NCBI GenBank assembly: GCA_964035545.1
Contig: CAXIUT010000198.1
Coordinates: 1 to 28,050, forward strand
Reading direction: 5' to 3'
DNA: 28,050 bases
Source of the DNA: Bugula neritina
Lineage: Eukaryota; Animalia; Bryozoa
Below are positions 1,745 through 25,794 of this stretch, in pieces. How positions within the stretch are numbered: the first letter of the stretch is position 1; each line of letters opens with the position of its first letter. The notes below the pieces were generated by a model that did not search any database, had not been told where the DNA came from, and worked only from the letters and a program-made list of their open reading frames with translations. The position numbers and the translations under genes were made by a program.

Positions 1745-1791
1745 TGTTGTAATAGGTATTTGAATTAAATTCAAATATTAATAATTTAAAG

Positions 1792-2574
1792 ATGAGCGAG
1801 TAATCATAGTTTAGTGAAGATGTTAATGTGGGATGGATTCAGTGGTTCGTTGGCTTAGAAGACCATGTCTTCTTCTGCTAAGTTAATGAAGATTTCATCA
1901 AAAACTAGTTCAACCTCTATGGACTTAAAAAAAAAGTCAACAAGTATAAGTATCTTTTTAGTTATACAGTGATGCTCTTAAAATGATCCTAAAAACTGTG
2001 CCTCCCAGTGAAGATGAAGTAGATGATCCAAGGTACCTTTTATCATATCTAGATTCTTGGAAATTTACCAATATGCTACTGAACTATACGGATTGATTCA
2101 TGCAAGATATATAACTACTCCTGAAGGTCTTGCAATTATGAGAGAGAGATATCTTGCTGGTCGTTTTGGCAATTGTCCGAGAGTGATGTGTGAAAAGCAG
2201 AATGTGTTGCCAATTGGAATCAGTTAAGATTTAAAAATAGCAAGGGTTAAAATATACTGTCCTCGTTGTAAAGATATCTATTCTCCTAAGAAGAAATCAG
2301 CTGATGCTGATGGAGCATATTTTGGTACTTCTTTCCCTCATTTAATTCTCATGGTAATTTATAGGTTATTCAGACTTATACCGATTTGAAACCTTATTTC
2401 AAGCGAGAGGAGTTCGTACCTAAAATATTTGGATTTAAAGTTGTATCGAATGAGTAATAAGGAGAAAAAGAAATGCTTAAAGAAAATAAGAGCATTTTGC
2501 CCAACTAAGTTGACAATATTGAGAGTTAAATTAAGCCTTAACCATCAAAAAAGAAGAATAAAAAGAAAAAATGA
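1792..2574 (+). CDS. CSNK2B: Casein kinase II regulatory subunit beta (240 aa); introns 1950-1969, 2033-2052, 2354-2373
   Basis: [76 protein letters not shown]. Three 20-nt GTA..AG introns restore the frame. Confidence 0.96.
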
Positions 2575-2654
2575 TTAGAGTATCATAGAATTCATTCATA
2601 ATAATTAAGATAAAATGAATTAATAAGTTGATAGATGAGTTGATTAATTTTGAT

Positions 2655-2659
2655 AAAAA
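2655..2659 (-). terminator. RNA polymerase III terminator (T5) of tRNA-Ala
   Basis: TTTTT immediately 3' of the tRNA discriminator base on the minus strand. Confidence 0.7.
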
Positions 2660-2732
2660 TGGAGTTATGGGGAATCGAACCCCAGGCCTCTTGAATGCAA
2701 ATCAAGCGCTCTACCAACTGAGCTATAACCCC
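2660..2732 (-). tRNA. trnA-UGC: tRNA-Ala (anticodon UGC)
   Basis: Reverse complement GGGGTTATAGCTCAGTTGGTAGAGCGCTTGATTTGCATTCAAGAGGCCTGGGGTTCGATTCCCCATAACTCCA folds as a cloverleaf with a G3:U70 alanine identity pair and a TTCGA T-loop. Confidence 0.97.
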
Positions 2733-2834
2733 AGACAATATATTTAATTTTATTCCCTTTAACTTACCAAAACTTTTAAACCATACTCTTTACTATATCG
2801 ATCTTTATAGAAATTCCATCTTGATTAAAAAAAA

Positions 2835-4360
2835 ATGAGTTTGACTGCCATTCTCAAAAAAATAGATAAAGTCAACGAAAGACATAGAGAAATAGCATCT
2901 CGCTACAATTCTTCAAGCAAAGATTGTCCACGTCAAAGTGAAATATAAAGATAATTTCAAGAAGATCAAAGAATATTTGGTAAAAATATATCTTATTTAG
3001 GCTACACCAGTTCTTAAATCCTTGGAGTTTTTAATACTAAACAATCTGATATAGGAGATGAAACAAGGCCTTGTACTGCTTTCATTAAAACTTCTAATGA
3101 TTAAGTAGCTTCCAAAAAATTATTACCATTAAAGGGAGGAAGAGTTAAAAGTGTAGGTAAACCAATTTTTGGAGTAAAGTAACAGTATAATTTTTTGTTT
3201 AAAGAAGATATTTTTCCAGAAAATTATGATAGATTAAGACAAACATTGCCTCAATACGAAAACTATGGAAAAAAATAATAGAAAAAATTAGTTAAAAAAT
3301 TCAAGAACTTTGTTTTGCCAAAGAGTAGAGCTAATATTCATGAAAAGGCCCTTGGAGACTAAAAAATAAGATTTCTCGAATCTTTTGAGGATAATTTAGA
3401 AATAATTCAAAAAAAAGAAGAAAAACCTCAATCAAAGATAAACAGAAATAAAATGACTTATGATAAAAAGATAGATCTCCAAACTCCTAAAATATATACT
3501 AGAAATACTAAAAATCTTCTTGAAGATGTTTTCAAATTAACAAAAACTAATTTTGAACTTGGAAGTAAAAAATTAAAGAGTCAATATTCTCTATCTTTAC
3601 CCAATCTAAAATAAGTACTACCTTTATTAAGTAAAACTGAAGATAAAAGATTTTCAAATATGGATCCTATTAGTAATAATCCAGTTCCTTTTGAAGGTTT
3701 TTATGAAGAGTTGCAAGGTTTATTATCAAATAAATTTTATTTAACCTGTATCGTTCTTCCATCTCTTTTGTCTCTTAAATTTACAATAACTCTCTCAAAA
3801 GATTAAATAATAATAAATTAAACTAAATAAAGGACTACTTTACATAATTTGACATAAATGTTACTTAGATAACACGATTTTATTCATCTAACTTTTCATA
3901 CAAAGTAATCTCTTTTAACTGAACTCTTCATCCTCAATAAAAATATTTGTCAATCGACTAAAGTAGAAAATTAGATGATTTTATTAAGTTATTACTTAAA
4001 GATGTTTTTGCTATTCGATAAAACAAGTGATATTCGATCTGCAAACTAGAGTAGTTAGTTGATGTTGAAAAGTACTTAATATTTAATAAAGGTAATATAG
4101 ACGTTCCTGATCGTTTTTATGAGTATGTTGATTCTCTCAATTCAAAGATCGTTCATTTTTACGATAGGGAGAATAGATATTATACATTGTATATTGGAAA
4201 TATATTGGAAAACGGGTTGAGAAGTGTGGATTCATTTAAAAGGGAATTAGGATTTGGGCAAAAAGTTGTCAAGTTGAAGGATGGGCTTATTGGAGATATA
4301 AAGAAGTAAGTGTATAATTGGGCGTATTTTTATATCTGCTTTCTGCATATCAACGTTAAA
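2835..4360 (+). CDS. Hypothetical protein; probable intron 4072-4091; 3' end unresolved
   Basis: TGA-free frame from ATG 2835 (MSLTAILKKIDKVNERHREIASRY...). The 20-nt gtacttaatatttaataaag shifts into ...SNIDVPDRFYEYVDSLNSK...GLIGDIKKE, which has no TGA until 4946-4948. Unspliced, the frame stops at 4218-4220. The end coordinate is approximate. Confidence 0.6.
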
Positions 4361-4364
4361 AATA

Positions 4365-4898
4365 TCAATATTTGTGGTAGTAGTTCATCTTTTGTCTTTT
4401 ATTTTCTTATATCCTCCTCAATCTTTACTTATTCTATTCGACTTCCTTCTTATGAAGTTATCTCATTAGTTTCCAAGCTACTTTCTTTTACTTTTACCTC
4501 TATCTTTTGTTCTTTTTTGGGTTGTCTGTTTATTATGTCATCATTTTCTAACTCTATTTCGCAAATTCAAACTAATAATCTTTCCTTTTTTCAATGTCTT
4601 CTCTTATTTTTTATCTTTATAGCTTTCTCATTGCAATGGAATCAAGGTTAATATCTTCTTCATGATTAATAAAATTAGCAAGATGTACCCATACATGATT
4701 GTTATAAGGATGTTTAACTATTTATGGGTTAGTTTTTCTTTTTATTTATTATTTACGAGTCAATTCCTTCATTTTTAATTCATCTTTTAGTGATATTTAT
4801 TTCAAACGATCACCTTGGCGTCGCTCAATGGTCATATAGATATCATTCTACATCTTTTGGAGACGTTAAAATTAGTTATTTAGTTTATCGTACTTCAT
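4365..4898 (-). CDS. Hypothetical coiled-coil protein (177 aa)
   Basis: MKYDKLNNEFERLQKMENDIYMTIERRQG...KKVAWKLMRELHKKEVEENKERLRRIEENKRQKMNYYHKY then TGA. Confidence 0.72.
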
Positions 4899-5127
4899 TA
4901 TCAATGGGTAGTTGCTTCGAAATTAAAGTTTATAATTAATAACTTTGATAAAATCATTTAGTTAAAAAGAGTTTTTCAATATAATTATCAATGAATTGTA
5001 TTATAGGTAGAAATATGATATGAACTGAATGTTATTTAATGTTGAAACAAAATAAAAGAAAGAGTTTCAGAATTTACTTTTTCTCCTGTAAAAAGTTGAT
5101 ATCTAATATAATAGCTAAACTTCAATA

Positions 5128-7324
5128 ATGAAGGCTCCTCCTAAAAACTAATCAGTTAAGGTGGCATTGAGAGTGCGTCCTCTAAACAAGAGATAGACAG
5201 AAATGAATTCTCCTCTTTGTGTATAAACTAAAGACAATGTTTTAAGTATCAGAAAAGGAGCAGATATTAAAGATTTTGTCTTTGATTACGTCTTTGGAAT
5301 TTAAACTAAGCAATATCAAGTCTACTAAACTTGTGGATATAGTCTTGTAGAAAACGCTCTTTAAGGCTTTAATGGTACAGTTTTCGCTTATGGACAAACT
5401 GGAGCTGGAAAAACTTTTTCTATGGTCGGAGATTATAAAGATCCAGAGTGGAAAGGAATCATTCCTAGAGGGTTCGATCATGTTATTACTGCCATTCAAA
5501 CATCTTAATCTAAAAAGTATATGGTTCGATCAAGTTTTATTGAAATCTATAACGAAGAAATTTATGATTTACTTGATTCTAAAGGAGATACAAAGAAAGA
5601 TTTAAAGGAAAGTCCTCAAACTGGAGTTTTTATAAAAGATTTAAAATCTGTTCCTGTTCGATCAGTCGATGAGATGTTTAAATTGCTTGACTATGGTAAT
5701 AAAAATAGATCAACTGCAGCTACTAAAATGAATGCAACTTCTTCTAGATCTCATGCTTTGTTTACGGTTCATATTTAATCAGTAGAAGGAGGAGATAAGG
5801 TTAAAGCGTCAAAACTTAACTTTGTAGATTTAGCTGGTTCAGAAAGACAAGGAAAAACTGGTGCTTCTGGAGATACTCTAAAAGAAGGAGCTAAAATCAA
5901 TCTTTCGCTCACTGCATTGGGTAATGTTATCAATTCACTTGTTGATGGAAAAAAAGGAGGACATATTCCTTATAGAGATTCTAAACTGACTAGATTACTT
6001 CAGGATTCTCTTGGAGGTAATACTAAAACTTTGATGATCGGTACTATTCATATTATATAGCAAGTGCATCTCCTGCTGAAGACAATTATGATGAGACAAT
6101 GAGTACATTGAGATATGCTGCAAGGGCAAGAAATATTAAAAATTCTCCTCATGTCAATGAAGATCCTAAGGATGCTTTGATCAAATAGTATTTGTCGGAA
6201 ATATAAAAATTAAAGAAACAGTTGGGAGGATCTTCTGGATAAATAAGTTAAACCTCTGATGAACTATATCAATAGTTAGAAGAAGCAAAATAAAAAGCAA
6301 AAAAACTTGATTAGAAAGAGTAAGAAATTTTAGCAATGAAGGCTAAGATGAAAGAAATGGAGGAATTAATGTTAAAGAAGTCTGACTTATAAACTCCTGA
6401 GATGGTTGAAAAGGCTAAAAAGAGAAGACTTTAAAAAAAGAAAATTATGAAAAATGAAGAAATTAATCAACATAGAGTTGAAGAATTATAAAATTAAGAA
6501 GAAAAAGATTTATAGGAAAATGAAATTGAAGAAGGAAAAGATATTTCTCATTGGAAAAGTATGGCTAAAAGATTAAAAAGAAAACTGAAAGCAACTATTC
6601 AGGATAAGAAAGATATCAGTCAATAGTTTGAAGATTAGAGACAAAGACTCAATGAAACTATTAGAAATATTGAAGGAAATTTATCTTTCTATAAACAAAT
6701 AGCTGATAAATTTATGTCTGAATCTGATATGGCAGCTTTGAAAGACTCCTCTACTTATGATTTTGAGAAACGAGAATATTTAATTCCTCCTTTTTTGCTT
6801 CATGATTAAAAATTAAATTTGCCTAAAACTTTGAAAAGAAGAGAAGTTGATGACCTTTGGCAAGAAAAAAGAAAAGGATATCAACTTAAACTACTTACTC
6901 CTGACCTTCCAAATATATCTCAAAATAACTCTTCATTGTTAAATATACCTGAAAGTAAAAGTACTGTCTTTTCAAAAGATTACAAATAACCTACAACTAA
7001 TCCTTTCTTGAGCAATAGAAGAATTTTGAAATACCTTAATCATGAAGATCCTAAATACAAAGAGAAAGATTATAATGTTGAAAGTGGAGTTGAAAGAGAA
7101 ACCTTCTTTAGAAGAACTAACTTCGCAATGAGAGAGGCTAGTAATAGTCAAAATAAGCGTCCACCTTCTGCTTCATTCAGAGTGGCTTCAAAGACAAGTA
7201 AATTAATACTAATTTAGAATTGGTAGCTATTGATACTAAGGGCTTATCCAAAGGAGAAAAGTCCGTATAGAAGCGTGAGATATCTCGTGGTAAAGAAAAG
7301 TTGCAGCCAATAGCAAAGAAGTGA
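5128..7324 (+). CDS. Kinesin-2 family motor (KIF3/KIF17/OSM-3-like, 718 aa); introns 6041-6060, 7198-7217
   Basis: [30 protein letters not shown] (P-loop), [37 protein letters not shown], kinesin-2 neck [12 protein letters not shown], then a coiled-coil stalk. Confidence 0.95.
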
Positions 7325-7378
7325 TTATGATTAATCGATATATGATAAATTAAATAAAGATAAAGAAAAATTATAGAA

Positions 7379-10300
7379 TCACTATTCTGTGTTTTTAGTC
7401 ATATGCAATTTCGTTAAGGTGTAATAGCTGAGAGCTGGAGTTTTTTTGGCATAGCTTTATTGGGCATTGGGGATCATTATTCCTTGTCTGATTCTGCGTA
7501 GCATGTTGTTCATGACTAAAAGAATTTCTTATTTAGATTCAGTTGTTGCCATTACAACCATTTCACATAGTTTACATGAAAAAACTTTACAAGTCTTTAT
7601 TGAAGAACCTGAATCTATCATGTTGAGATAAGGTTAAGAAGAATTTAGTAGGATTTGTGTTTTTGTTATTTATTTAATTTTACCTGAATCAAGAGATAAA
7701 TACCTGAGGTGAAGACTGGTACTAATAAATTTGAAGAACTCATTGAAGCCCATTTAATTGACTCCCATGAAATACTGTATCTTTTCTTAACAAAGTCAAG
7801 ATAGTTCTGACATCCTGTAGTCACGCATTAGGGACCATTTGCCATATTAGAATACTAGTGAACTTTCTTTTTCTTACATCTACAACTTAAATCATTCTTT
7901 TTCTTCAATCTTGTCATTTCTTTGAGAATTAGAGTGACACTTCCACAAATACACTGCAATTTAGGTAATTCTTCAACTCTTTGTTCGATATCATTAAGAA
8001 TTTTCAAAGCCGATGATAGTGAAAGCAAATCAGATGTAAAAGTTGGAAAAAGCAGAATTTGGGTGTTGATGAGACACCAAGTTTCATATACTGAGCATCT
8101 GAACCAATAGCTTAAAGTATAAATGATAATGTTAGTAGCATAGTTTGTGTCATCATTGATGAAGAGCAGTCTTCCCTTGAGAAGCAATACTTATCTTAAT
8201 AAATCTGATATTTTAGGTGCTAGTCTAAATGCTAGAGTAGTGAGATGGATATCTTTAAAAGATATCAACAAAGTATTGAACTTTCTAAAAAGAGGATGAT
8301 TGCTAGTGGTGACTATATGTGTTATTTTAAGTTATTTTAGCTTTTAATATCCTCCTTATTATAGATGAATATTCTAGCAGAAAAAGATATCTTCCATAAT
8401 TCTCATAAATTTATTGCTTTTTGAGTTATTATAGCTTGATAAAAAATGCACTCCTCGAATTCTATTATCTCTCACTCGATATTCCAACTAAGTATTGCTT
8501 GTTACTATGCACTATGATTCTTCGGGTTATTTTTTCAACTATTACACGTATTTATTCACCAGAACTTCTATATCTTTTTGAACCATGAGTGGAGACTTCA
8601 GTATGTGAGGCGTTTCTTTACAATCTCCAAAAAGATCTCTAAATTTTTGAATTACACCTTTTATTTCAGGACGATGTTGAGGATCTCTGATCAAAATAGT
8701 TCTAAGATATTCAAGAATATTAGAGAAATTAGGATATTTATCTAATTTTTGTAGATTATTTTTGGTGAGTATTTATTCGTTTGGGCTGGTCACTTGGATA
8801 TAGAAGTTGACCCAATCAGCTCGATGGTATAGATAGTCTCCTGTCAGCATTTAATAAAAAAGACAGCCAATAGACCATACATCTGATGCTCTGGTCGTTC
8901 CAGTCTTTTTCCTTCTATCATAATTATCAGCTTATTTTTTTAGATGTAGAGCTAGAGTCAACATTTAAGGAGATTTGATGCATTCTGTTCCTCTTGATTT
9001 GATATCAAGTTATTCTTTAGATTATTCATAGATTCTGCATTATCCAAAATCTCCAATAACTACTTTTATAGGATCGCCTGTATGTTAGTCTAAATCTAGA
9101 AGGATATTGTCAGCTTTGATATCATAATGCGTTACAGATTTTTAATGTAAAAGCAACATGATGTGAAGTACATCCCAAAATATCTTCAAAATCTGATTAA
9201 TTTTATTAGGCAATTATTCTTTATGTTTTAGAATCCAATCTCTTAAAGAACAAGTGTATCTTTTCATCACAATGATATACGAATTATTGACGATGCCATA
9301 ATTGTACATAGTAGTGATTCTTTAATCTAGTCTAAAATTTTAAAGGCAACTGATCTAAGTAAAGATATCATGGAGGACACATCGTTAGTATATACTTTTA
9401 GGGAAGTTCATTTATTTTATTGCTACTTATTCTGGTTACTATATGTTTGTTTAGCAACTATAGATGACTCCGTATGCTCCTGCGCTGATTTTCTTCCAGT
9501 TTTTGTAGTGACTTAAATCAGTAAAAGTTGTGGAAAGTAATTTTAGCAATCTTTGACCGCATAAATATGGTTTTATTTTGCCTACAGATTCAGCTAAAAT
9601 GGGAATAACCGAACGATTTGATTCTTCATTTAGGTGATGATGCAAAATATATAAAGCATTGATTTTACCATGCGTAATAGGGAATTGATCGCAGTATTCT
9701 GGATCAAGAAGTCCTTTGTTTAAAAGCAATGACAATACTAACAGAATAGCCTATGAGTGAAGAGTCTTATTAGAATATATTTTCCTGATTTTTCTTTATG
9801 AAGAATAAATAACATTTCTTTCTGATGAATTTGCACTGAGATCATACTACCTTGATCTATTGATATTAAGTTTAGTGAGATTAAGTTATAATCCGACTCT
9901 TTTTGGTCTATCATTGATTTACTAAAGGAGGTTATCAAGAACTCCTCTCTATTTATCTTATTCTTGACGATCACTTTTGGTTGGAAGTTTGATAGATGGA
10001 ACAATGGTTTTCTTTTTTGTTTTAAATTATTGTTATTGTTTTACTGGTGAGGTTTTTGTTTTTAGTTTTTATGATTTTAATGGAAGGTTGGGTATTTTAT
10101 TTGATATTTTTTATGGTTGTGTTTTTATTTTGGTAGGAACATCAACTGTTTTAGTTACTTTTTTGATAAACTTTTATATATTTTATGCAACTTAAAATTA
10201 AAGTTAAAATTATCTGATAAAAAATTACAAAATTCTATATTGTTTGATTTTTCTACTGATTTAAAATGTTCTATTGATAGCAATACTTCCTAATATTTTG

Positions 10301-12648
10301 ATAAAAGTTATCATATAAATGGTATTGATACTGGGATGATAGCTGATATGAGGAGATTCCTTTGTAGCTAGTTAGTATCCATCATTTTGTAGATTAATGA
10401 GCTCATTCACAGTAATGAAAGAGTATAACTTGATAAAGTTGATAAAACTGTACTTGATGTAGAATGAAACCACTTATTCTTATAATAAATTTTATGATAG
10501 TTAATCGTGACAATAGTAAAAAATTTACCTGATAAAATCTAGAAGTTAATGCATGAAATGATGCTATTAGATGGTATTTTAGTTTATTTCTGGAGATGCA
10601 GATATTAGAGGTTATTTTTATTATAATTTTGAAGCAATGCAGCCTAATTTAGGATAAAAATATCCTGAAAGATGATTAAATAGTATTTTTATTGATTTAC
10701 TTTATTGATTACGTAGTTTTCTTTGATTGTATATATCTAAACATTTACGATAAAAAATAAGTACCTTTTTAATTTACTTATAAAAATTGTTATCAAAGAG
10801 ATATCTCATATATTTCTAGAGAGTTTACATAAAAATAGCATTTTTAATAAATACAGTAGATATTAGTCGTTCTACATGTTTATGGTTGGACATTAAACTG
10901 CCAATTACCAACAGATAGTTGCTAAATAACTATGGGTAGCGTGTGATTAGTGGTTATTATGTTTTTATACTTTTGAAGGAATCGTTTCTATCCTTTTTGT
11001 TGAATCTTTTACTGCTGTTAAACTGTTTTTAGTTTTATAAATAATCAAGAAAAGGATGAGATAGTTAAAGAATTTGACGTTTGATTAGGATCAGAATAGG
11101 AAAGAGAGAATCTATAGCTTGATAGTGGGCTGTATTTGAAAAAGAATGATGAAGATAGTTAGCTAGAAAAGCCAGGAGATTTGATTAATACTTATAAAAT
11201 CTAGGGCTATTCATATCACAAAGGGTAAAAAGTTGATTGATTTTAATGCTAATTTATCCAATTACAAAATCTATTTATTCTTCTTTCTTATTTTTAATAG
11301 ATCCATTGATAGTTTTTAGATGTTATATTCTGACTAACTTGATATCTTTAGTTAGATACTAGTCATTAATTTCCTTTTCTATGAGTTACTATTCATAGTA
11401 ATAAGAATTATTTTTTTTATTTCTATTCCATAGCAGTTTGAGATGTCTTTTTTATGTGATAAAACTGATTCTTTGTCCCCATAAACTGATAATTTAGTTG
11501 ACAGGTATTAGTTCTAATTGAATAGTTGAAAAATATTAGCTGGAACTATTTTATGTCTGATTTGTTTTCCAGCCATCGACTATACCAACTGTTGTTAGTT
11601 CTAAATAATCAAGGTATAAAGGTTTTATCTCTGTTATTGAATAATTATTCGAAGTGAGGTTACTTTTGAGACAAAGATGGATAAGGTTAGTTAATATTAT
11701 TAATACTTTTTTACTGTATCTTTTAGTTGTATCATCTATTTGTTTATCGAATCCTGAGCGGGTTTGACTGTAGTTACTTTAGAGGACTGATAATCTTGAT
11801 GAAAGTAGTCGATCTGATTATGCCTTTTATAAACATTGACTTCGATAATCTGAGTTATTTGAAAACTATTGAACCTGTTGAGTTCGTTTGTATGCCAGTA
11901 AGCATCCTAATTCTACTGCAATGAAGCCTTATCCGATAGAACTAGCTAATTATCTCAGTTATCCTATTCCATTGATCCTTTATTATCGGGAAATTGCTGA
12001 GTATCTGGATGATTGTATTGATTTAGAAGATGGAAGAAGGAGTGGAGGTATTTTTGAGAGACTGATATTGACTTATTCGGTGTTATCTTTTTGATTTTGT
12101 GGTTTATATTTTTTTGAGAGATGTGTTTCTAGGTTTTACTTTGCATTTTCCCAGGATTAAAATTATTACTTGCCAAGATCTTGAAGAAATTTTAGTTCTC
12201 CATTTTCCTAGAAGTGAGAAGATACAACTTTATTTATCAGCTTTCTGATTCTCTCAGGAGCAAGTATATTTTTGAGTCTGTTTGCATATTTTTTAGCAAT
12301 CAGAAAGAAGAAAGCAAGACTAATAAAGCAAGATGTATGTTGGAACATGTGATTCATAAATTAATTAGTAATATGTTCTAGTGTTTGTGGTTGGTCTTCA
12401 ATTATTTTTTTGAGGAGTTCTTCGATGAGAAGCAGACACTTCTATGCTGTAGTTCTATCATCTAGATGTTTATAGTGGAGTAGATTTCTGGTTTGGCAAG
12501 TGGTAACAATCAGGGAGGAGGCGATGGAATTGGCTGCGGCTGGGGTAAGGATTGGTTGTGCCTTGATGATTTTTTTGAGATAGTCTGCTAGTTGTGGGTT
12601 AAGAGAAGGTAGTTTGCTGAGTTACTTTATTATAGTAGTTGACTACAT
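7379..12648 (-). CDS. Large (~1749 aa) Ser/Thr kinase-domain protein with C-terminal DSP-like and Cys-rich regions; intron 7684-7703
   Basis: One TGA-free frame from ATG 12648. Kinase at about 9500-8650: ISAGAYGVIY, VAIK, HYDIKADNILL, IGDFGE, RGTECIKSPE, DVWSIGC, DPQHRP. Confidence 0.88.
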
Positions 12649-12716
12649 TTGAATATAATATCGTATTTATATTATATGATGATGGATTATAAAAAACATG
12701 AAGATGCAAATGCATT

Positions 12717-14347
12717 TCAAAATCGTCGGGATTTACTTTTGGATTTATCTTATGTTCTCTTTAATCCTGCTTTCAGGAGGTTAAGTACCTTCACATTGCA
12801 TTTCCCTGTCTCTTTCTTGCCTGGCTTCTCCTTCATAGTCCTAACTAATCCTTCTTTATCTTTTCTATGAGTAAAAGTGCTAGTTAATTTAAGAGGAGAT
12901 TGTCTGACCATTTTTAACTATAGTTTTAAATTTTATTGACATGTTTATGTTAATTTTCTATAATTGCCTGTGATGTTCATTGGATTTTGTTATTTCTATT
13001 TTGATTTATGTGATGATGTAGTTGTTCTTTTTCTGCATTATGATACTTATGTCAGCTTTTTTTACTTCTTTACATGTTAAAATTCAACTCTTAACCATGG
13101 ATGCATCAAAACCTATATTTAATTTATTTATACCTCAGCTGCTGTGATACGATCATCAGGGTTTACTCTCAACATTTTTCCCACTAAATCGAGGATTTCT
13201 TTAGAGAAATACAACTATTGTCTAGGATATTAGGCATTATTGATCTTCTTGTATAGCTATTGGTCAGTAGCTCCTTTGAAAGGAAAGATTCCTGTCAATG
13301 TGACAAAAGTTAGTACACCTAATGCCCATATATCAGCAGGTTATCCTCGATATTCTTTTTTTTGAACGATTTATGGTGCCATGTAGCTTGGTGTTCCACA
13401 AAATATTTTAACCTGAATATTATAAAGACTACTTTTTTTTGTTTTTCGATACAAGTACTGAATCCAAAATCGATAAGACTGGGTGAGAGGTCTTATCCTA
13501 GTATAATATTTTCTAGCTTGATATCTCTGTGTGAAATTTGTCTTTGATGAAGATATTCTAGAGCTTCAGCAAGTGATCTGATGATTGTTTTACAGTGATT
13601 TTAAGGAGCTCTGTGATTAGGTTGATTTTTGAGGTAGTGATTTAGTGAAATTCCATCTAAATATTCCATGATGATGTTGAGATGATTGTTGGTTTAAACA
13701 ACATCAAGTATTTTAACAATATTTGGATGGCTGAGCATTTGTAGGATTCTGATTTATCTTCTGACAGATTTTTTTCTTTGTTGTTCTCTTAATTTAACTT
13801 TTTAATAGACTTTGATTGCTACTTTTCTTCCTAATGGTTTATATGTAGCTACACGTACAGATGCGTATGCTCCTTATCCGACTATTTTCCCGACTGTATA
13901 TTATTTTTTGAACTATGCTGTGAGATCTTATTTTTGTTAGAAGAGTTGATCGATTCTATCTTCATCGAGATCACTCATTAGGGGTAGTCCATTGAGTAAT
14001 TTATCAGTTTAGTCATCAACTTTAAGGAATTTGACTGAGTTAGCAAAATCTTTGATGGGTTTTGATTTTTTCCAGTCATCTTGCTGGTGTTGTTCTGTTT
14101 TGGTTTTTGATTTGGAGCGATTGAAGAGACGATCGATATCTTATTCTGTCATTATATTTTTTTTATTGTTTTTGGTTGTCATGGTAGGTGCTTTATTGAT
14201 TGTTTTATTGAGCTTGGCTGTACTGTTTTTCCATAGTCCGTTGGAATTAATTGCTCTAAGAATATGACTGACATCGCTAGTAAGTGTAGTCACTGCTGCA
14301 GTCTCTTTTGGTTTACGACGACGGTTCATGTTTTATTTACTGTGCAT
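12717..14347 (-). CDS. CAMK-like (MARK/SNF1-related) Ser/Thr kinase; introns 13413-13432 (20 nt), 13113-13133 (21 nt)
   Basis: VGEGAYASV, VAIKVYEK, HRDIKLENI, IDFGFS, FCGTPSYMAPE (E=TAA), DIWALGV, HPWL. The in-frame ATG at 14389 is an alternative start. Confidence 0.93.
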
Positions 14348-14479
14348 AACGACTATTATTATAATACTATTACCATTATTCTACTTCATTAAATATTATT
14401 CTTTTAAAAATCAAAAGAACAAGATTCAAAATTGTTTTTAGAGTTCAGATCAACTTTGGAGGCATAAATTAGATTTATA

Positions 14480-14890: not shown

Positions 14891-14988
14891 AGCTTTAAAA
14901 TTTGATAATAAATATTGCTATTTCAAAATACATTTTTGCCACTATTTTACAGAATATTATGATTGTACAATGCATTGATCAATTAGAA

Positions 14989-16320
14989 TCATCTTCCTTG
15001 TCTGTGTCTCCTAAGTTACTCTTCAATCTTTTTTTGTTCTTCAAGGAAAGAAGGATTGCTCCATTCGCTTTCAAAATTAGAAGGACCATTTGGCGCTCCT
15101 TTTCCAATGCCGCCCATACTCTGCATGATTGCCATCTGGAGCTCATGGTCTTCATTGTTCAGACCAAGATTGCCCATGGCATACTCTTCTTGGAGGAAGT
15201 CTGGGTTCACCTTTGATTATTAGACTTCTTGCTTATATATCACTTTTTGTTTGATTTATGGAGCTTGAATACGATTATTTGAACCATTTTTGTTATAGGA
15301 AGGCTTTTCCTACCTTTTAGGAACTTAGTATTTAGGCACTTAGTATTTGGGAGGTTAAGTTTTTTTTTCAATTGATCTAGTGTGACTTATACCTCCGTTT
15401 TTGTAATGAATTGATGGATGATAGTTGACTTCTTTGTGACTAGTAACTGTAGGTTTAGGAACTTAGCGAGTTCCTACACTTCTTTTGTTATCAGTTGATC
15501 CATTTTGATATATAGGTTGTTGATGGGTAATAGATCCTGGAGGTTTGGGTTTTTAATTTTTGTTTGTGAAGGTGGGAGGTTGATTCATGGTTCCTGGATA
15601 TCTTTTGATTTCTTATCGTTTATACTAGACAGGTTTGTTTGGGTGTCTGATGATTTATCTTTTTTATTAATATTTAACTTCTGTTCTGATAACTTTAGGT
15701 GCTTATTGGAATCCTTGTCTTTCAATGACTCGAGCATTGCTATATTTGACTTCTTCTTTAGGTTTATATTAATATTTTTCGACTTTTGGAGGTTATCTAG
15801 GTTTTTCTCTAGATCTAGAGTTAACATGATTAACAGTAGGTTTTTGTTCAAACTGTTTTCTTTGATGTTCAATATGTTAATAATAGTTTTTCATTGGGGG
15901 AGGTTGTGGTTCTTCTACAATTCCTTCACAAGATACTATATGGAGAATATAGTCTTTGTTCATTATGGGTCGATTGCATTTAGTGCATGGTTTTGTTCTT
16001 GCTTCACAATCTTTGACATGTACGTTATAGGTCTTTACTGGTACATTGAGATCACAATATTCACAGTATTTCGGTTTTAGTTAGCATTTAGATTAGTGTT
16101 TTTGGAAGTCATTCGAGGGGAAAGATTTTTTGCAGTGAGGACATTAGTCTTATCGATGATATTCTTAATCATGTTATTACTTGAAATTAATGTCATACAT
16201 TTCTTGGCAGATAGTACATTTTTTAATATTTCTACGACAGTAGCCAAAGTGAGTAGCTATTTTGCTTTCTGGAAATTCTTTTAGACAGTTATCGCACTTT
16301 TATTGAGGTTAGTCTGACAT
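14989..16320 (-). CDS. TRAF-type zinc finger protein (TRAFD1/XAF1-like) with C-terminal UIM (443 aa)
   Basis: Repeated CxxC..H..C units (CDNC..HFGYCRRN, CTIC, CPHC, CEYC..HVKDCEARTKPCTKC), a P/K/E-rich linker, and UIM-like EDHELQMAIMQSM. Confidence 0.85.
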
Positions 16321-16679
16321 CAGTTTCGGAACTTCTTCAAATGAAATTATAATAACTACCTAACTACTACAACAAAGTAATAAAACGTCGCTGATATAAA
16401 AATGATAACATCATGATATTTATATATTAAAGTCAACTTTTTTAACAATCATTTAAGAAAAATAATAAATTTTATTATTATTATGAGCTAAACTATATTT
16501 GAACTTTTTATGTTGTAAGAATTATTATATTTTTTAATGATTAGATTCAATAAATCTATTGCTTTTGAATAAGTTTTTTATCTATCTTTTAGTCCTGATA
16601 TTTGATTGATTAGTGTTTTTCTGTCAACTATTGTCCATTTAAAGCTTTGATATTATAATTACTCTTATACATATTAAGT

Positions 16680-18248
16680 ATGCTGTTTTTGGACGAGTAA
16701 GAACTAGAAAAACATAAGAAGAACTATACTAAATTGACTCAATCTCAGTTCTAGAACACTTATAAACAGGAAGGATTGCTTGGTAGTGGCACTTTTGGTT
16801 CAGTTTACAAAGTCAGAAATCAAGGAAAAAATCATCAAGGGTAAATACTAGCTCTTAAATAATTCAATCATAGAGCAAATTCACATTTTAAACAAATTAT
16901 GAGGGAAGTAGATAATCTCAAGTTATTGCAGCATCCTAATATCGCCAGATTTTATGATTGCTATATTGTAGATGATAGCTACTATTACGTGCTGATTGAA
17001 TACTGTTCTCAAGGATCTCTAACTTAATATCTATAGCACAACAAATTAAATGACTTCAGTAAGATGTTGATTTGTAAAAATATAGCTGCAGGTTTGGAGT
17101 ATGCTCACAACAAAAAGGTAGTACATCGTGACTTGAAACCTGACAACATATTGATAAGTTAGAAAGGAATAGCTAAGATATGTGATTTTGGGTGTAGTTC
17201 AAAGGCTAATGATATTGAAAATTAAGAAGTTTTAAAGACTTGCACGGGATCTCCTGCTTACATGGATTAAAGAGTAAATTTGGGAGATCCTTATGATTGG
17301 ACTGTGGATATCTATTCTTTAGGTATGATTTTTTTCTGTATGTTTAAGGGATAAGGGATCTATGATGACTGTAACTCTGTTTATAAAATTGAGCAACAAA
17401 GAAAATCGATCAATTCTAACTACTAAGAGTAAATGATGAAACTTTTAACAGGAATTCCTAATCCTATCAAAGGAATCATCTTTAATGCTCTTCATCCTAA
17501 TCACAAAAAGAGATACAGTGCTCATGAGATTTATCAAATGTTGTAAAAAGAGTAAGGCAACAAATCTTTTATGTCTAAGATTCAATCAACTATGGATGAA
17601 GAAGATATTGAAGACTAATCTAGTTTGTTTGCAATTGGATTAGTTCACTATTATAAAAATATTGAAAAAGAACAGAAATCTTTATCTACTAAAAAGACAG
17701 TTATTGAAGTTTTACATCAAGCTAAAAAAAATATGAGTAAAATATAGTCTATAACAACTTTAAAATATGTATCACCTCCAACCAAAGAACATTTTGCAGC
17801 TTTTGTTCTCTTTTATTATAACTTTTGGTTGGATAGGATGTCTTCTCTTTTGAGAGGTGAGCCTTCAGAGTTATCTCACCGATATAAACAGATTAATTCA
17901 GGAGCAATTGAGCAAGACTTATTACTCCAGAGTTAGAAACATATTTAATCTGAGCGGGATAAGTATAAATCATTTTTTGTTCGTTGTTGCAGAAATATTT
18001 CTCCAAAGTTGAGGTTGATGGATGGTAGAACTTACTTTCCTTAAATCTTTAAGAAAATGGTCAAAGCAGTAGCTGTGGGAAATAATTTGAATTTTGATGA
18101 CTATGAAGATGAGATGCTTAGGTAGGAAATTGAAATATTTTTTTAGAAAAGAATTTAAAATTAGTTTAGGACTAATTTAGGAAAAGGATCGGATGTCAAG
18201 AGTTGGGAAGAGTTATAAGAAATTAGGAATGTATGTAAAGATTTATGA
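16680..18248 (+). CDS. Ser/Thr protein kinase (522 aa), N-terminal catalytic domain
   Basis: [44 protein letters not shown]. No introns needed. Confidence 0.93.
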
Positions 18249-18581
18249 TTGATGTCTAGTTTAATAGATGTTACTATTTTTATTTTTTATTTTTAAGAAA
18301 AATAGAGTTTAGAAATTGTTTATTTTTAATAGTTAATCATTTGATTATGATTAAAAAGACAATTTGGCTTTATATCTGGGTTTTCTTATCTTTTTTAACT
18401 TACTTTTATGAAAATTTAGATTCATTATCACCCACTCTTTAATTTACAACTATCAATAAAATAAATTAAAATGGTTTTGAAAAAATTGAATAATTTTCTT
18501 AAATATAAAACTTTGTTGATTTATTTGATAGATTTTCTATTAAAATGAATCAATTATTTATGATACGATTAATAATATAAA

Positions 18582-19195
18582 ATGAACCCTAAATTAATCA
18601 TCATTGGTCTTCTTACAGTTGGCCTTCTAGCCTCCTCTCCAGTACTTCTTGTATCTGGCCAAGAGTAACTTTCGTCTTAGATAGACATACTCCTCTCTTC
18701 ACTTCAGCTGATCTGCTTGATTATGTTTAAAAACAATCAAAAACTAAACTTGTTGAACTAACTTCTACTATCAACCAAGATCTATCTTAAATAAAGGAAG
18801 TACTAAAGGAGCTTGGTGTTTCAAAATAAAAAGTTAGTTCTTTCTTGACTTCTTCTTAAAAGTTGACAAACTTAAAATAAAAACTTCAGCAATTGGAGAG
18901 TTATAAGCTAACTTTAGAAGAATTAAAAGAGGTTTTAAAGGTCAGTCAAGATAATTTTATCATAACAGCTACACCAACAGTGACACCTCGTATGCTTCAT
19001 GCAGTCAATGGCACAATGGCAACTAATTCAACACGTTCTCATCTCTTTAACGATATGTCTCCATATGCCTTATCTGGACTGTTTGTTTCCCTCTTTTTGT
19101 TGGTAGTTCTTTGCATTGGAGTAAGTTGCTTATTGGATCTCAAAACTAATGATCGCTTTGCCAGACAGAATTTGTGGGTCGGACGTGAATCATGA
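18582..19195 (+). CDS. V-ATPase accessory subunit Ac45/VOA1-like type I membrane protein (197 aa); intron 18665-18684
   Basis: N-terminal signal peptide (MNPKLIIIGLLTVGLLASSP). C-terminal MSPYALSGLFVSLFLLVVLCIGVSCLLDLKTNDRF resembles the Ac45/VOA1 transmembrane motif. Confidence 0.7.
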
Positions 19196-19250
19196 TTAAA
19201 TCATTATGAATCAATAGTAATAAATGAATTATTTATAATTATTGAGTTTA

Positions 19251-21551
19251 TCAGAATTCAAAGGTTGAGGGATCTGGATTTGGTACTTTCAGACTATTTT
19301 TAAATAGAAATTCTGCGAGGTTATCAACTGGATCACTGGGAAATTTGTCTAAAAGTTCTACAATTCCTTCTGAAAGGATAGGAACTAGGTTGATATCAAG
19401 ATATTTTCTTAGAGCTAGAGATTTTTTATCAAGAATTTATCTTTCCTAATTTTGTTAATTTTATTTTTTCATAACATAATCTTCATTTTGAGTATCTCTA
19501 GTTATTTTTTATTTTTTATCCAATTCTTTCCTAAAGTTGGTCTTCATTTAATGTTATTTCTTTAATCTTTAATCGACAGTATTTCTTTAGACTGATTCAT
19601 CTCCTCTCATTTATTTTACTAGCGATTAAAGAATCGCATTTGTTTGAGGACCAATTTTGACATGATGACATGGTATCTTATTTTATTTAAAGAAATCTTC
19701 AAGTACAAATTATCCACTATCTGTATTATGTAGGTTTCTGTATCTTTTAAGAAGAGCTACAATTTTTTGTTGACTTAGATGAGTACCAGCTATTTGTTGC
19801 TAAGGCAATTTTTGAATTCTTTCGATGATTTATTCATCTGTCATGTTAAGAATCATCAGCTTTGTTGGAGCTAGTCTTTCATCAAGGATCTTTTTAGTGT
19901 TTTAATCAGGTTATTCTCCTTATGGAAGTGTAGGTAGACCCATGAATAGTTCTTTGCATATAATATCTAAGAGGATACCTAAAGATCAACGGATATTTTT
20001 ATTGAATTTAGGTCAATCTCATTTAGACACTTGTATCCAGAAGCAGTAGATATAATCACTTAATCTTATATCTACTGCTTCTGGATCAAAAGGTTCTAAA
20101 GGATCACCTAAATCAATAAAAATATACGTTGATCTTTAGGTATTTTCTTCCATTTTTATTTGAATTATTCATATTATGCTTGTTTGGTTGCAACTTAGGA
20201 TTATTTCTTTTAATTCAAAAAGTTTTTAATTTCTTATCCAAACTATGTTTTCTGTTCTTTCACTTAGTCGATTACACTTTTAATTGTTATATGAGGCAAA
20301 TAATATTTTTAAGAAAGTCTGTGTTAAAGTAAATATACTTATTGGCATAGAAAGTTTTTCCTGATCCTGGTGGTCCTATGATAAAGATTTTTTATTGAAA
20401 TAATCCATGAACTTTATTATATTATTGTCTTAGGAGTTCGATTGATTTTTGAAGACCTTACCTACTTCTCCATTAAAATTTAAATTTAACAACCTAAACT
20501 CCTTCTTCAGCTTCTATTCCAGCTTATTCTTATTAGAGTTTAGCAAAGATCATAGTTGGCTTCATTCTTAAATTTAAACATAATTATTTCACATTTTTTT
20601 ATGTTCCTTTTGTTTAGGTACATTCAACCTAACCTGTACCTATACCTTTTGAAATCGATTCTATAATCTTTTTCTGAGTAGGTTTTGCATTATGATCTAG
20701 TGCTAGAAAATAGTATGATTTTGGTTTTCTTTCTATAATTTTTTAAACATAAGTGACTAAATCTGCAGTATGAATTGTTGGTATTCTATTTTTTCCTTTT
20801 CCAAAAATAGGTAGTTTCTTAGGAATTTGAAGTCTTGCTTGCATAAAATAATCATAAAATAAATTTTATCCTTCTCCATATTGAAGCCCACCACAGACAA
20901 CATAGGATTTTAAGTTTTATTTGACATTTCCAGCAGCTAAACATAAAGTTTAAATTGATTTTATTTTTTAATATTAAGGATCAGGCTTTCTTAATGCAAA
21001 ATCTCGATCTGTAAAGCGAACATATGTCTTTTTTTATTATCCTTAAGCAGGCTATGCTCCTCCTTATTCCTCAGTATCTGGTTCTTATACAGGATTTTAG
21101 TCTCCTTATTCTTATTCTCCTTATTTTTTTTATTTAGGGGAGGTTCTTGCCCAAGTCATGACATTTGATAGACAGATGAGTGTTTTTTATTCTTGGAAGG
21201 GATGAATTTTAAGTGTTGAAATAACGAATTCTGCTTATTTTAGGTCAGCCGTTGTAAGATCATAGATAATAACATCAGAGTTGAGAATAACTTCTTCAAA
21301 AAAATTGACTTTTCCTGTCTACATTATCAAATATCTACATCAATGACCTTTCTTACTCCTCCTGGAACATCATATTTACTTTTTGAAATAGTAGTACCAA
21401 CTATACGATTGGGATTTTCAGGATGTGCACTATCATTGCGTAGACGACGAACTAGGTGTTGACCGAAGAAGGTGTTGAGAGAAGAAAGAAAATATTTAGT
21501 TGGTTGGTAGGGAGGTGGTTCCTTTACTGGAGGTTTTTACTCTTATGACAT
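19251..21551 (-). CDS. AK7: Adenylate kinase 7 (Rossmann-like N-terminus, AK domain, DPY30); introns 21319-21338, 20319-20338, 20108-20127; locally disrupted at about 19975-20055
   Basis: CLSNVMTWART, GLQYGEGE, GKGKNRIPTIH, IIGPPGSGKT, C-terminal LRKYLDINLVPILSEGI..PSDPVDNLAEFLF. Three in-frame TGAs occur only within the inverted-repeat arm. Confidence 0.9.
19975..20143. repeat. Imperfect ~80-bp-arm inverted repeat (fold-back) inside AK7
   Basis: Perfect 21-bp core ATCCAGAAGCAGTAGATATAA (20035-20055) pairs with 20066-20086 around a 10-nt loop. The outer arms share ATACCTAAAGATCAACG.ATATTTTTATTGA.TTTAGGT. Confidence 0.92.
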
Positions 21552-21591
21552 AAGTTATAATATTTAAATGTCATCATATCTATGATATTTA

Positions 21592-23103
21592 TCATTCAGA
21601 AGAGATTATTGACTGACTAATGTTCTTAACTATGTGCCATTAGTCCTAAACTTTACCCAAAGGTATTGTTCGATATTGATATTTGAGGGTGTTTCCTTTA
21701 ATAGTGATTCTTCCATATCCATAGGCTTTGGCTCTTCTGGCTGACCACTCAGGAGTTGGATTGATATATTTACTATTAGCAAAGGCTCCTGCTGTTCCTT
21801 GAACTACATATACTGGATATTAAGGATACATATAGTGAGTATTGTTTGCTCTTTATTTCATTGCTTTTCCTTTAAAAGTTGGCCAACTACGTTCGTAGTC
21901 ATGAACATGACCTGTTTGAACAATATCTACTTTATATTTGTTAACTAAATCTTCAAGATGAAAAGCTAAATTGGTAACATTTGCATGTTAAAAGGCATTT
22001 GATGAGTAAAAAAATCTATGTACTCCAAGAATAATCCATTGAATATTAGGATTAGAACGAGCTTCTTTTAAGTCTGCTTAAAGATAATCATATTGTTCAC
22101 TGGTTAGATTATAAGGGTGTTCTGATGAGAAATGGATCATGTGAACTTGTCCATAGTTGAATGAAAACCACAGATTTGTTTGACTTTGATTTTTTCTAGG
22201 AAGAACATAGCGCTTCATGTAAGATGTGTAGTTATAATATTTTTCATGATTGCCAACTCCTGGCATAAATGCAGTTGATGCTGCAACAGGTTCAATAAGC
22301 TATCCAAATAAATCCCAGATGGGCTAAAATTATCCAATTTGTTGAGAATTCATGCCTGCATATGCAATATCTCCAGTGAGGAAGACGAAATCAAGTGGTT
22401 TAGTGAAGTGATCTTTAGATATTTGATTGATAACAAAATGACCAAAAGGAGCAAAAGTGCCCATATCTCCAAAAGTAGCAATGTTTATTTCTTCTAGCTG
22501 TTGTACTTTGAGAGGAGGTGCTCTAAATTGTTTTATTTTTGAAAAAGTACGAGTTTCAGCATCACCGACACGATAGTAGTAAGTTTTCAGAGGTTATAAT
22601 CCAGACATCACAGCTCGATAGATTCTACCATGAAATCCAAAATGTCCTACATTGTATGTAGTATAAGTAGCTTTAGCTTAAAACTTAAAAGCAGCAGGGT
22701 AGCGACCATACTGGACAATTGGTTTTTAATATTTTTATGGAGTTGAGACCCAAATCACTTGCATCTATCCTTCGTCATTCGTGAATCCGATATGAATTTG
22801 TTTATGTCCTGTTTTTGCTGTCACTTTAATTTTAGCTATTTCTATTAATTCTTTGAGAGTAACTTTTTTATCTTGATCTGCATCGAAAAAACTATGAATT
22901 GGAATGACATCAGCTTCTGTAATGTGATGTTAAGGTTCCATAAATCTGAAGTAATTGATAAATTATTAGAGCGTAGCAGAACCATCGTTATTTGTATCAT
23001 AGGTTGCCTCGAAAAAACCTTTGAGATGGCTAAAAGTTACTTCTGTGCATGCTATTTGAGTGAAAATAAACAATGATATCAATAGTATGTTTAGGTATTT
23101 CAT
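21592..23103 (-). CDS. Secreted purple acid phosphatase with N-terminal EF-hand pair (503 aa)
   Basis: Signal peptide, EF loops DTNNDGSATLEE and DADQDKKVTLKE, PAP N-domain (QIHIGF..MQVIW), and metal motifs FGDMG, GDIAY, GNHE, VHR, GHVH. Confidence 0.92.
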
Positions 23104-23221
23104 TATTTTTATAATTAATAAAGTCCATTGATATTATTTCAAACGGTAAACATTATTTTTGATTGTTTAATCCTTTATAAATCATTTTGATGATTTTTAA
23201 TGATATTTTTTATCTGTGATA

Positions 23222-23650
23222 ATGACCTGGACTAGATTATTTTACGTCAAAAATCTTTAACTAGCCTTCAAAAGAGTTATTCCTAGTAGGGGTCGACCTT
23301 AATTACCCATTAGCAAGAGATATCAGGCATAAATTCGCAAATAGTTCCGAATGGCAGGTGTACCATGGATCTATAATATGTAATAAATGAAGGCTAACCC
23401 TCGAGATAGACGTCCTAAAAGTAAAAAAAGAGATGCTGAGAGGTTGATAAGGTTGTAAAAAATACAAAAAGCTTTGAAGGATAATGAACAAAACTAGATA
23501 GATTATCGTCAAGATAAATTAAATAAAAGAAGGCTAAAGGGAACAGATTAAATGTTATCTCGAGGACTTCCTTCTTGGATTAAGACAGATCTTAAAGAAA
23601 TTCCTGATTACATGTTGAGAGGAAGGAAAGGAGATGAAGGTGATGATTGA
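23222..23650 (+). CDS. Mitochondrial ribosomal protein mL59 (MRPL25)-like (142 aa)
   Basis: LPISKRYQAEIRKEFRMAGVPW..PKSKKRDAERLIRLEKIQKALKDNEQNEIDYRQ fits the mL59 pattern as I recall it. Confidence 0.65.
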
Positions 23651-24104
23651 ATACTTTAAATAGCTTAGATTATTGAAATAGCTTAATAGATATAATGAGA
23701 TATTGAAAAGTTTATCTTTATCAATTAAAGTAGCATTGAACTTTTTTGAACAAAAAAAGTAATATTTTACTTTTTTTGATTTTGAATTTATTCCAATTGA
23801 TGTTAAACAAACATTTGTTGCATTATTTTATTGCTTCGAGTTGAAAAAGTCAAGATCTATTTTTTGAGATAGTCTTATTGGTCTTAGTTTGATTCTTTCA
23901 TTTTCAAAGTTCTAAACTTTCTTCTTTCTTTTATTTTTATTGTAGAATTTCATCATCATTTACCATTTATAGAAAATAAGGCTAAAATCAAAAAATAATC
24001 AGATCAATTTTGATAAAAAGGCATCCTAAAGTTGATAGTTGATTTTTATAAACTTAAATGTTTTCAAACTTCATTTTCTTATAATTATTTTTACAACTCA
24101 ACAC

Positions 24105-24932
24105 ATGTCATCTGATTCAGAACTTGAATTCATGCTAAACTGTGGCTCCCACTAAAACAATTTCGGTCTTATGGACAGTCTTTTGATCTCTTATGGAAGT
24201 AGTGAGCAATAATTCTCTGACTTCTAGCCTATGCATATTGGAAGAGAGATCATTCCTGAATCTCTGTAAAACAGCCCAGTTGGTCAGGAGAATAGTTCTT
24301 CTTTAAACAACACTAATGTTAGCTCAAACAATCTTCTTGTTCAAAATATAAATGTTCAGGAGCAACACAACAGGAAGGACAAATGTTCAAAAAATCTTCC
24401 TCAAAATGTCAGCTCATTTATCAAAACTATTCTAGCTAAAATTTTATCTTCAGAATCAGCAAATAAAAAGGAGGAAATGAAGAAGGTAAGGAATCGGTTG
24501 TTAACTTATTTAAAATAACACAAAGCTGACAATAATCAGTTAGTTGTGGTATTTGTCTATTTTTTCATGATCATTTAACATGCTACTAAAAATCAATTCC
24601 TCTAGTTAAGAGGTGAACTCATAAGATATCTGGACAAGAGACAGGTTGAATCAAGCCATTTGGAATCTGAGGAGCAGTAAAGACTCAAGGAAAAGATAGC
24701 TGTTCATAAGAGATTGGTGGAGTATTACTTTGATGGAAGTCGTCCTGAGGTTGAGAGTGGTTGGCTGAAGACAGTGTGCTCTATTCTTTTTACGGGTCGT
24801 CAACAAAGCACAATTGTCAAGCCTTTGAAGAAGTTAGAGGAGATTCAAAGGAGCATAACTGGTTCGGATAGTGAATACTTACTTCCTAACCAACAATAAA
24901 ACATCTAATCATTTTTCGAGTCAAGCTCGTGA
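24105..24932 (+). CDS. Hypothetical protein (275 aa)
   Basis: TGA-free frame MSSDSELEFMLNCGSHENNF...KCSKNLPQNVSSFIK...ESFFESSS. It includes the ORF-track segment 24714-24899. Confidence 0.8.
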
Positions 24933-25047
24933 ATGAATGATGGCAACAATATTCTATATTTCTAACTTTCCCTATTAAAATCTTATTATTAGTTGTTAAT
25001 CTATTTGACTATAAATGCCTTAACTATTAATTAATTTTTAAGATATT

Positions 25048-25275
25048 ATGAACAATCGTCAGGCTATTCTTCAACTCTATAGAACTTATTTTACTCTTAC
25101 TAAAAACTGTTTGGACCATTCACTTAAGCAGTATATTCGTCGTAGAGCTACTTAGGACTTCAGATCTTTTTCTAAGATGGAATAAAAAGAAGGTCAAAAG
25201 TAATTTTTAAGGTTAAAGGAGTAGGTATAAGTGGTGCGTCGGCAGATGATAGTCCGAGAGAGAAATCTAATATGA
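25048..25275 (+). CDS. LYR-motif protein, ISD11/LYRM4-like (75 aa)
   Basis: MNNRQAILQLYRTYFTLTKNCLDHSLKQYIRRRATEDFR...EEVEVVRRQMIV. LYR, YxxRR...FR and RRQ are typical of ISD11. Confidence 0.78.
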
Positions 25276-25351
25276 TGGTTGTATTACTAATTTTATGATA
25301 AACCTACTATAAATATCAGAAAACCATAAAAGCTATAATTATAAATTAACA

Positions 25352-25794
25352 ATGTTCTCGAAAGTTGGAAAGGTATGCAAGTATTTTTCATCTTTAATCA
25401 AAGACGAAGTTCAATTTACTAAATCATTTACTAATGTATTTTACTTATGATAAAGGCTTTGACTTAGAAGTTAGCATCGAGATAGAAATCTTAGTTCCTT
25501 AGATTAGAGATATCAGCAGGATGTATTTTTATTGATGATTTAGAAGGGTGTGAGGGATATACTTATAAGTTTAAATTTGATAATGTACTTAATAAAAATG
25601 ATTTTGTTTCTAAAATTGAAAATGATAGAATTGTTTTTGCTTTGGGAGAAGAAGAATTGCATTTAGTTAAGGGATCAACTCTAGATTATGTTAAAGAAAT
25701 GATGAGAGAGACCTTTTATGTTATGGAAAATCCTAATGCAGAGTTATCTTGTAGCTGTAAGACCTCTTTTTCACCGAAGGATTTTTTAGTTTGA
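25352..25794 (+). CDS. ISCA2: Mitochondrial Fe-S assembly protein IscA2/HesB family (133 aa); introns 25436-25455 (20 nt), 25523-25543 (21 nt)
   Basis: Presequence-like N-terminus, FLRLEISAGEGCEGYTYKF, VKGSTLDY, ENPNAELSCSCKTSF. Confidence 0.9.

Follow-up and report, generated by a model that had tools for sequence, protein, structure and literature searches.

The window analysed here is a stretch of DNA of 28,050 nucleotides (nt), positions 1 to 28,050 of contig CAXIUT010000198.1 in the Bugula neritina assembly GCA_964035545.1, and the question is how its many in-frame TAA and TAG codons are read. The closest described system is the nuclear code of the peritrich ciliates, NCBI translation table 30. 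Where the code is treated in PMC11687900, PMC10089648 and PMC4967479 (citing Sanchez-Silva 2003 and Heaphy 2016), peritrichs (Sessilida) are described as using UAA and UAG (together UAR) for glutamate and UGA as the sole stop. The window shares all three assignments with Vorticella, Opisthonecta, Carchesium and Campanella, differs from their code at no point, and matches them in its ciliate macronuclear context too. With a probability of roughly 0.9, we read it as a complete ciliate macronuclear chromosome whose nuclear genes are written in this code. Because of the match to table 30, the code is not a new one; it has been known since 2003.

Other described codes resemble that of the window in part. 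The Tetrahymena-Paramecium code (table 6) reassigns the same two codons and keeps UGA as the sole stop; the C4A2 telomere repeat is also shared, and Paramecium supplies the nearest named kinesin homologue. It differs in that UAR is glutamine, whereas in the orthologue alignments glutamate residues pair with TAA or TAG (TAR) in 25% of cases and glutamine residues in 6%. We rejected this code, as conserved glutamines of the kinesin are encoded by CAA and CAG and, for both codons, glutamine scores more than 50 nats below glutamate. The code with UAA as lysine and UAG as glutamate, which PMC11687900 cites for an uncultured oligohymenophorean, shares UAG as glutamate and an oligohymenophorean-like ciliate as its bearer. 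It too was rejected, since UAA of the window is glutamate as well, with lysine as the partner at 8 of 163 sites. The Mesodinium code (table 29) likewise gives both UAR codons to one amino acid and stops at UGA; that amino acid, tyrosine, pairs with TAR at 3 of 327 aligned positions, and the code was discarded. The codes without a dedicated stop (tables 27 and 28) were set aside because the genes of this window have no in-frame TGA and all checked ends are TGA.

TAA and TAG at conserved glutamate positions

The kinesin query, an 89-residue stop-free piece, returned 150 representatives, of which 69 cover the motor domain. These were aligned with the spliced kinesin of the window, with X placed at TAA and TAG, and the two codons were scored apart by a Codetta-style sum of profile log-odds. 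A first profile made with the default entropy weighting of HMMER gave small margins, and it was rebuilt without that weighting. Glutamate then scored best for both codons: +6.1 nats versus +0.6 for glutamine over the 10 TAA sites of the window kinesin, and +4.3 versus -1.5 for threonine over its 3 TAG sites. With the kinesins of two relatives added, the values were 21.9 versus -5.7 (glutamate and glutamine, 29 TAA sites) and 8.7 versus 4.2 (glutamate and aspartate, 12 TAG sites). As a control, the profile decoded 53 of 53 sense codons correctly. The gene and the sites that carry this result are the following.

5128-7324, + strand: kinesin-2 gene, with introns at 6041-6060 and 7198-7217 and the stop TGA at 7322-7324, in the same place in the relative.
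5149, + strand: TAA, facing glutamate in 31 of 43 aligned distant homologues.
5194-5196, + strand: TAG in RPLNKR-TAG, facing glutamate in 41 of 42 aligned distant kinesins.
5362-5364, + strand: TAA in NAL-TAA-GFNG, facing glutamate in 33 of 58 aligned kinesins and the next residue 5 times.
5776-5778, + strand: TAA in FTVHI-TAA-S, facing glutamate in 61 of 69 kinesins.
6186-6188, + strand: TAG, facing glutamate in 40 of 66 aligned homologues.

Similar sites occur in four further genes. The glutamate of the APE motif is invariant in kinases, and it is TAA in both kinase domains listed here.

1792-2574, + strand: casein kinase 2 (CK2) beta gene of 240 codons, with 8 TAA, 2 TAG and the stop TGA at 2572-2574; three 20-nt introns.
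1879-1881, + strand: TAA in FFC-TAA-VNED of CK2 beta, where the relative's contig L001 has TAG.
7618-12700, - strand: giant gene, about 1,690 codons long, whose C-terminal part encodes a kinase domain; its first TGA is the stop at 7618-7620.
8965-8967, - strand: TAA at the APE-motif glutamate position, KSP-TAA-ML, in the kinase domain of the giant protein.
12717-14300, - strand: CAMK-like kinase gene (Pfam Pkinase), the 5' limit being approximate.
13754-13756, - strand: TAA at the helix-C glutamate of the CAMK-like kinase.
13371-13373, - strand: TAA at the APE glutamate of the CAMK-like kinase, SYMAP-TAA-IV.
13257-13259, - strand: TAG in ATDQ-TAG-LY of the CAMK-like kinase.
21592-23103, - strand: purple acid phosphatase gene with N-terminal EF-hands, whose matches carry PF16656 and PF00149.
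22963-22968, - strand: two TAA at positions 11 and 12 of the phosphatase EF-hand loop DTNNDGSATL-TAA-TAA-F.

CK2 beta was identified by two Pfam CK_II_beta matches (3e-21 and 6e-14) and has an orthologue in L001. Its pieces on the two sides of the TAA are collinear in the Pfam profile, ending at position 116 and resuming at 118. The kinase domain of the giant protein, near its C-terminus, is divergent.

A codon check placed every TAA named by an earlier note on this DNA (in CK2 beta, kinesin, KSP, YMAP and EF-hand position 12) where that note had put it, and both of its TAG sites, in RPLNKR and TDQ..LY, are present as well. It had further observed that conserved glutamine uses CAA or CAG; YGQT of the kinesin indeed has CAA (5395) and LLQDS has CAG (6001).

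One clear case of TAR at a glutamine position was seen in the relative, whose second kinesin (L001 7556-8600) is a divergent paralogue. There TAA stands at the normally invariant glutamine of the P-loop, AYG-TAA-NKSGKT; the surrounding motif is altered too.

Orthologues, clade and strains

Two short kinesin fragments among the matches end exactly at a TAA or glutamate codon of the window, and their contigs are L001 and L002; the closest phosphatase fragment lies on L003 and L004. L001 and L003 are metagenome contigs of a related species, and their synteny with the window covers positions 280-7,200 (L001) and 16,600-27,100 (L003). Both are about 70% identical to the window in DNA, have a G+C content of 39%, and likewise carry in-frame TAA and TAG. 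The orthologue comparison covered 4,630 aligned codons, and X was placed at every TAA and TAG, so that the alignments had no bias towards glutamate.

The sense partners of TAA (n = 163) were glutamate at 94 sites (0.58), followed by glutamine and aspartate (11 each) and lysine (8); those of TAG (n = 64) were glutamate at 39 (0.61) and glutamine at 6. For comparison, the share of glutamate partners was 0.62 for GAA and 0.56 for GAG versus 0.11 for CAA and 0.04 for CAG. Scored with a substitution table taken from the same alignments, glutamate led aspartate, the runner-up for TAA, by 154 nats and glutamine, the runner-up for TAG, by 57 nats. A TAR codon in the other species faced 25% of glutamate residues, 6% of glutamine residues and 1% of lysine residues (Fisher test of glutamate against all others, 2e-100), and 3 of 327 aligned tyrosine residues. 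The glutamine share among partners of TAR (7.5%) did not differ from that among partners of GAA and GAG (GAR; 5.2%, p = 0.30). The sum of GAR and TAR codons was nearly equal, 506 in the window versus 508 in the relatives, and TAR supplied 45% of glutamate codons in the window versus 32% in the relative with 39% G+C.

Codon inference run separately for TAA and TAG on the window genes and the relatives thus returned glutamate for both by two independent methods (TAA, 6.1 nats in the profile and a margin of 154 nats in the orthologues; TAG, 4.3 and 57 nats), in agreement with the earlier note. That note had judged its TAG evidence to be thinner than that for TAA, a reservation that 64 sense-partner sites, 61% of them glutamate, have removed. 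The pattern that it named as contrary, TAR lying mainly opposite glutamine or lysine, was not found at these sites, where the partners were glutamine 11 and lysine 8 times of 163 for TAA and glutamine 6 times of 64 for TAG. Judged from the alignments, UAA and UAG are evidently translated and mean glutamate, and UGA terminates.

The phosphatase piece has at least 86 fragment clusters in metagenomes (P0151-P0236; L005-L016), at 55-85% identity, which occur in ENA, JGI and Logan and in the NCBI assemblies GCA_041192925.1 and GCA_041447075.1. Many of these fragments end exactly at TAA or TAG positions of the window, as would be expected if gene callers using the bacterial code had broken the same code there. 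As at least 86 clusters are broken at the same codons, a clade with UAR as glutamate occurs widely across public metagenomes, where its genes are systematically mis-called and appear as fragments. Among relatives that read through, the TAA at 22330-22332 faces glutamate in 24 of 24, the TAG at 22324-22326 in 17 of 24 and the TAG at 22300-22302 in 12 of 13; the last site is presumably not conserved as glutamate in plant purple acid phosphatases and was used within the clade only. Some fragments stop opposite a glutamine codon of the window, in a column that varies between glutamate and glutamine across the clade. A word search with the IscA protein of the window returned 11 fragments. When an open reading frame of the window itself was looked up in public assemblies, there was no record.

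Near-identical strains were compared on contigs of four public runs over 7,650-13,600, which include most of the giant gene. The glutamate codons of this gene are 88 TAA, 20 TAG, 46 GAA and 4 GAG, so that TAA and TAG make up 108 of 158 (68%). Thirty of the 32 strain differences listed for it are silent third-position changes, including TAG to TAA twice and TAA to TAG once; the other two are a silent first-position change in a leucine codon and a change of methionine to isoleucine. A further change affects one codon.

10816-10818, - strand (giant gene): TAG in the window, GAA in run X3 (TAG to GAA); a minor contig of run X1 has TAA.

The strain differences are almost all synonymous, which argues that this long TAR-rich frame is under strong purifying selection and that the exchange of TAG and GAA behaves as silent.

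TGA as the stop codon

Over 5,601 codons, the reading frames contained 250 TAA, 66 TAG and no TGA. In the two other frames TGA occurred 134 and 198 times, or 24-35 per 1,000 codons. The contrast is much too large to have arisen by chance. In eight genes the alignment with the orthologue closes on a TGA in each species, the two stops coinciding or lying a few codons apart, and the similarity does not continue past them. The kinesin is the ninth, with the same TGA end in both species after its last 20-nt intron. TAA and TAG occur up to a few codons before the TGA at gene ends. Genes whose ends could be followed in this way include the following.

4365-4950, - strand: small convergent gene, absent from the list of frames of 150 codons, with a clear L001 orthologue; both end in HKY followed by TGA.
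16653-18248, + strand: second kinase gene, its stop TGA at 18246-18248 lying, in each species, four codons beyond the end of the alignment.
19251-21572, - strand: adenylate-kinase-7-like gene with a Dpy-30-type C-terminus (we take the family name from our reading of the sequence, not from a Pfam result), ending in STFEF and then TGA in both species.
25048-25794, + strand: IscA-type Fe-S assembly gene, ending in KDFLV and then TGA in both species.

TGA is the only stop in this window. The claim of the earlier note that TGA alone terminates therefore stands on 0 of 5,601 codons in frame and on 9 of 9 checked orthologous ends, with one exceptional gene, U1, which is taken up below.

The chromosome and its genes

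The assembly evidently includes bacterial contigs as well. The window has a G+C content of 30%. Since C4A2 repeats lie at its start and G4T2 repeats near its end, it is a telomere-capped ciliate macronuclear chromosome of about 27.5 kb.

1-88: 5' telomere of C4A2 repeats, read directly and found by a regular-expression match.
27447-27527: 3' telomere of G4T2 repeats, found by a regular-expression match.

Beyond the 3' repeats lie 523 unrelated bases (27528-28050), which lack a C4A2 tract that would belong to a second chromosome. Compared with the window and the loci of the relatives, their sole match is one of 23 bases inside the window. This tail is probably an assembly join.

Read with TGA-only frames, the chromosome holds about 17 protein genes on both strands and one tRNA gene. 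The proteins read are a K/E-rich protein, CK2 beta, the unnamed U1, the product of the small convergent gene, kinesin-2, the giant kinase-containing protein, the CAMK-like kinase, a zinc-finger/UIM protein, the second kinase, an Ac45/VOA1-like membrane protein, the adenylate-kinase-7-like protein, the purple acid phosphatase with EF-hands, a small basic protein, IscA and a coiled-coil protein. Pfam searches with stop-free pieces confirmed the kinesin, Pkinase and CK_II_beta identities. The longest TGA-free frame spans 1,822 codons and holds 94 TAA and 24 TAG. All five resolved introns are exactly 20 nt long with GT..AG borders, mostly GTA..TAG or GTA..CAG, and the introns of L001 lie in the same places.

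1950-1969, 2033-2052 and 2354-2373, + strand: 20-nt introns of CK2 beta (those of kinesin-2, at 6041-6060 and 7198-7217, are given above).
2659-2733, - strand: tRNA-Ala(UGC), the sole tRNA of the window, with synteny kept in L001.
2845-4336, + strand: unnamed gene U1, compared with its orthologue in the relative.
23222-23653, + strand: gene for a small basic protein (about 143 residues) that shares 79% identity with the orthologue in L003, the highest conservation of any gene in this part of the window.

In the window and in L001 (2477-2550) alike, the tRNA-Ala(UGC) gene lies between CK2 beta and U1 and is read from the opposite strand, so that the synteny includes a tRNA gene.

Weighing the reading

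On this reading, UAA and UAG are ordinary glutamate codons and UGA is the sole terminator. By analogy with known reassigned codes, UAA and UAG would be read by dedicated glutamate-charged tRNAs whose anticodons are UUA and/or CUA, and eRF1 would no longer recognise these codons. For the eRF1 of Carchesium, PMC10089648 reports that the GTS motif is deleted.

Four points weigh against this reading. The deep-homology test of TAG in the window has three sites only. The orthologue test shows TAR and GAR to be interchangeable within the lineage, and it assumes one code in both species. U1 lacks a TGA at the stop position of its orthologue, and no in-frame TGA follows for a further 204 codons. Finally, the search for tRNAs with the anticodon UUA or CUA found none in the window or in 12 loci of relatives (about 150 kb), which add only a tRNA-Ala orthologue, and neither an eRF1 gene nor ribosomal DNA (rDNA) was found in the window or in the roughly 150 kb of relatives' contigs; it is for this reason that we infer the decoding machinery and the taxon.

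The most serious rival concerns the taxon: the same code, with UAR as glutamate, could have been acquired independently in a ciliate lineage outside Peritrichia, which we consider possible but unlikely. The lack of rDNA in the window would leave room for such a lineage, as would the kinesin matches. Nor did the word searches with the phosphatase and IscA pieces bring up a named close relative. The named taxa among the nearest kinesin clusters are Paramecium sonneborni, which is the nearest, Nyctotherus ovalis and Diphylleia, and thus not a peritrich, in labelled sets that apparently hold no peritrich reference. On the other side, C4A2 telomeres, with which a relative's contig (L009) also starts, fit Oligohymenophorea. 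A marine biofilm metagenome (SAMN08714533) is the source of the closest relative, and marine biofilm is a typical habitat of sessile peritrichs. A narrow distribution of tiny intron lengths has been reported for three peritrich genomes (PMC13685798), and every UAR = Glu lineage described in the relevant parts of PMC11687900 and PMC10089648 is a peritrich. The C4A2 telomeres, the 20-nt introns, Paramecium as the source of the nearest named kinesin and the biofilm-derived relative all fit a sessile peritrich without proving it. Peritrichia is the parsimonious placement; on this circumstantial evidence the known lineage is to be preferred, and the source is most likely a sessile peritrich.

U1 bears on a second rival, a context-dependent code without a dedicated stop, of the Condylostoma or karyorelictid type, in which UAR would be glutamate inside genes and stop at their ends, UGA would sometimes be sense, or both. 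In the relative, TGA follows directly after NWAYFYI of U1; the window codon there (4334-4340 region) is TGC, which counts in favour of this rival. However, the first 113 codons past the expected end include neither TAA nor TAG, and stopping at TAR therefore does not explain U1. The frame runs on antisense into the convergent neighbour, whose stop lies only about 25 nt from the expected end. The cause in U1 may be a sequencing error, a real loss of the stop, or a UGA completed by polyadenylation after ..UG. Elsewhere the absence of TGA from 5,601 in-frame codons, and nine of nine checked orthologous ends with TGA in both species and TAA or TAG up to a few codons before it, speak against such a code, which we regard as very improbable.

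A split code, with lysine or glutamine for one of TAA and TAG, has an example in a related class (in the part of PMC11687900 that treats it) and is scarcely credible here, given glutamate at 94 of 163 TAA partners (lysine 8, glutamine 11) and 39 of 64 TAG partners (glutamine 6), a glutamine share that is no higher for TAR than for GAR (7.5% versus 5.2%, p = 0.30), no glutamine or lysine codon class that pairs with TAR above 6%, and the free interchange of TAA and TAG between species and strains.

Implications

The peritrich code as the reading of this chromosome has a direct practical consequence: gene calling on the assembly must use table 30. The standard or the bacterial code breaks every gene into pieces of 30-100 residues, as is seen in the public phosphatase fragments. 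The published evidence for this code began with UAA, and here glutamate as the meaning of UAG was demonstrated separately and quantified. Knowledge of genetic codes as such would change only if the organism were to lie outside Peritrichia.

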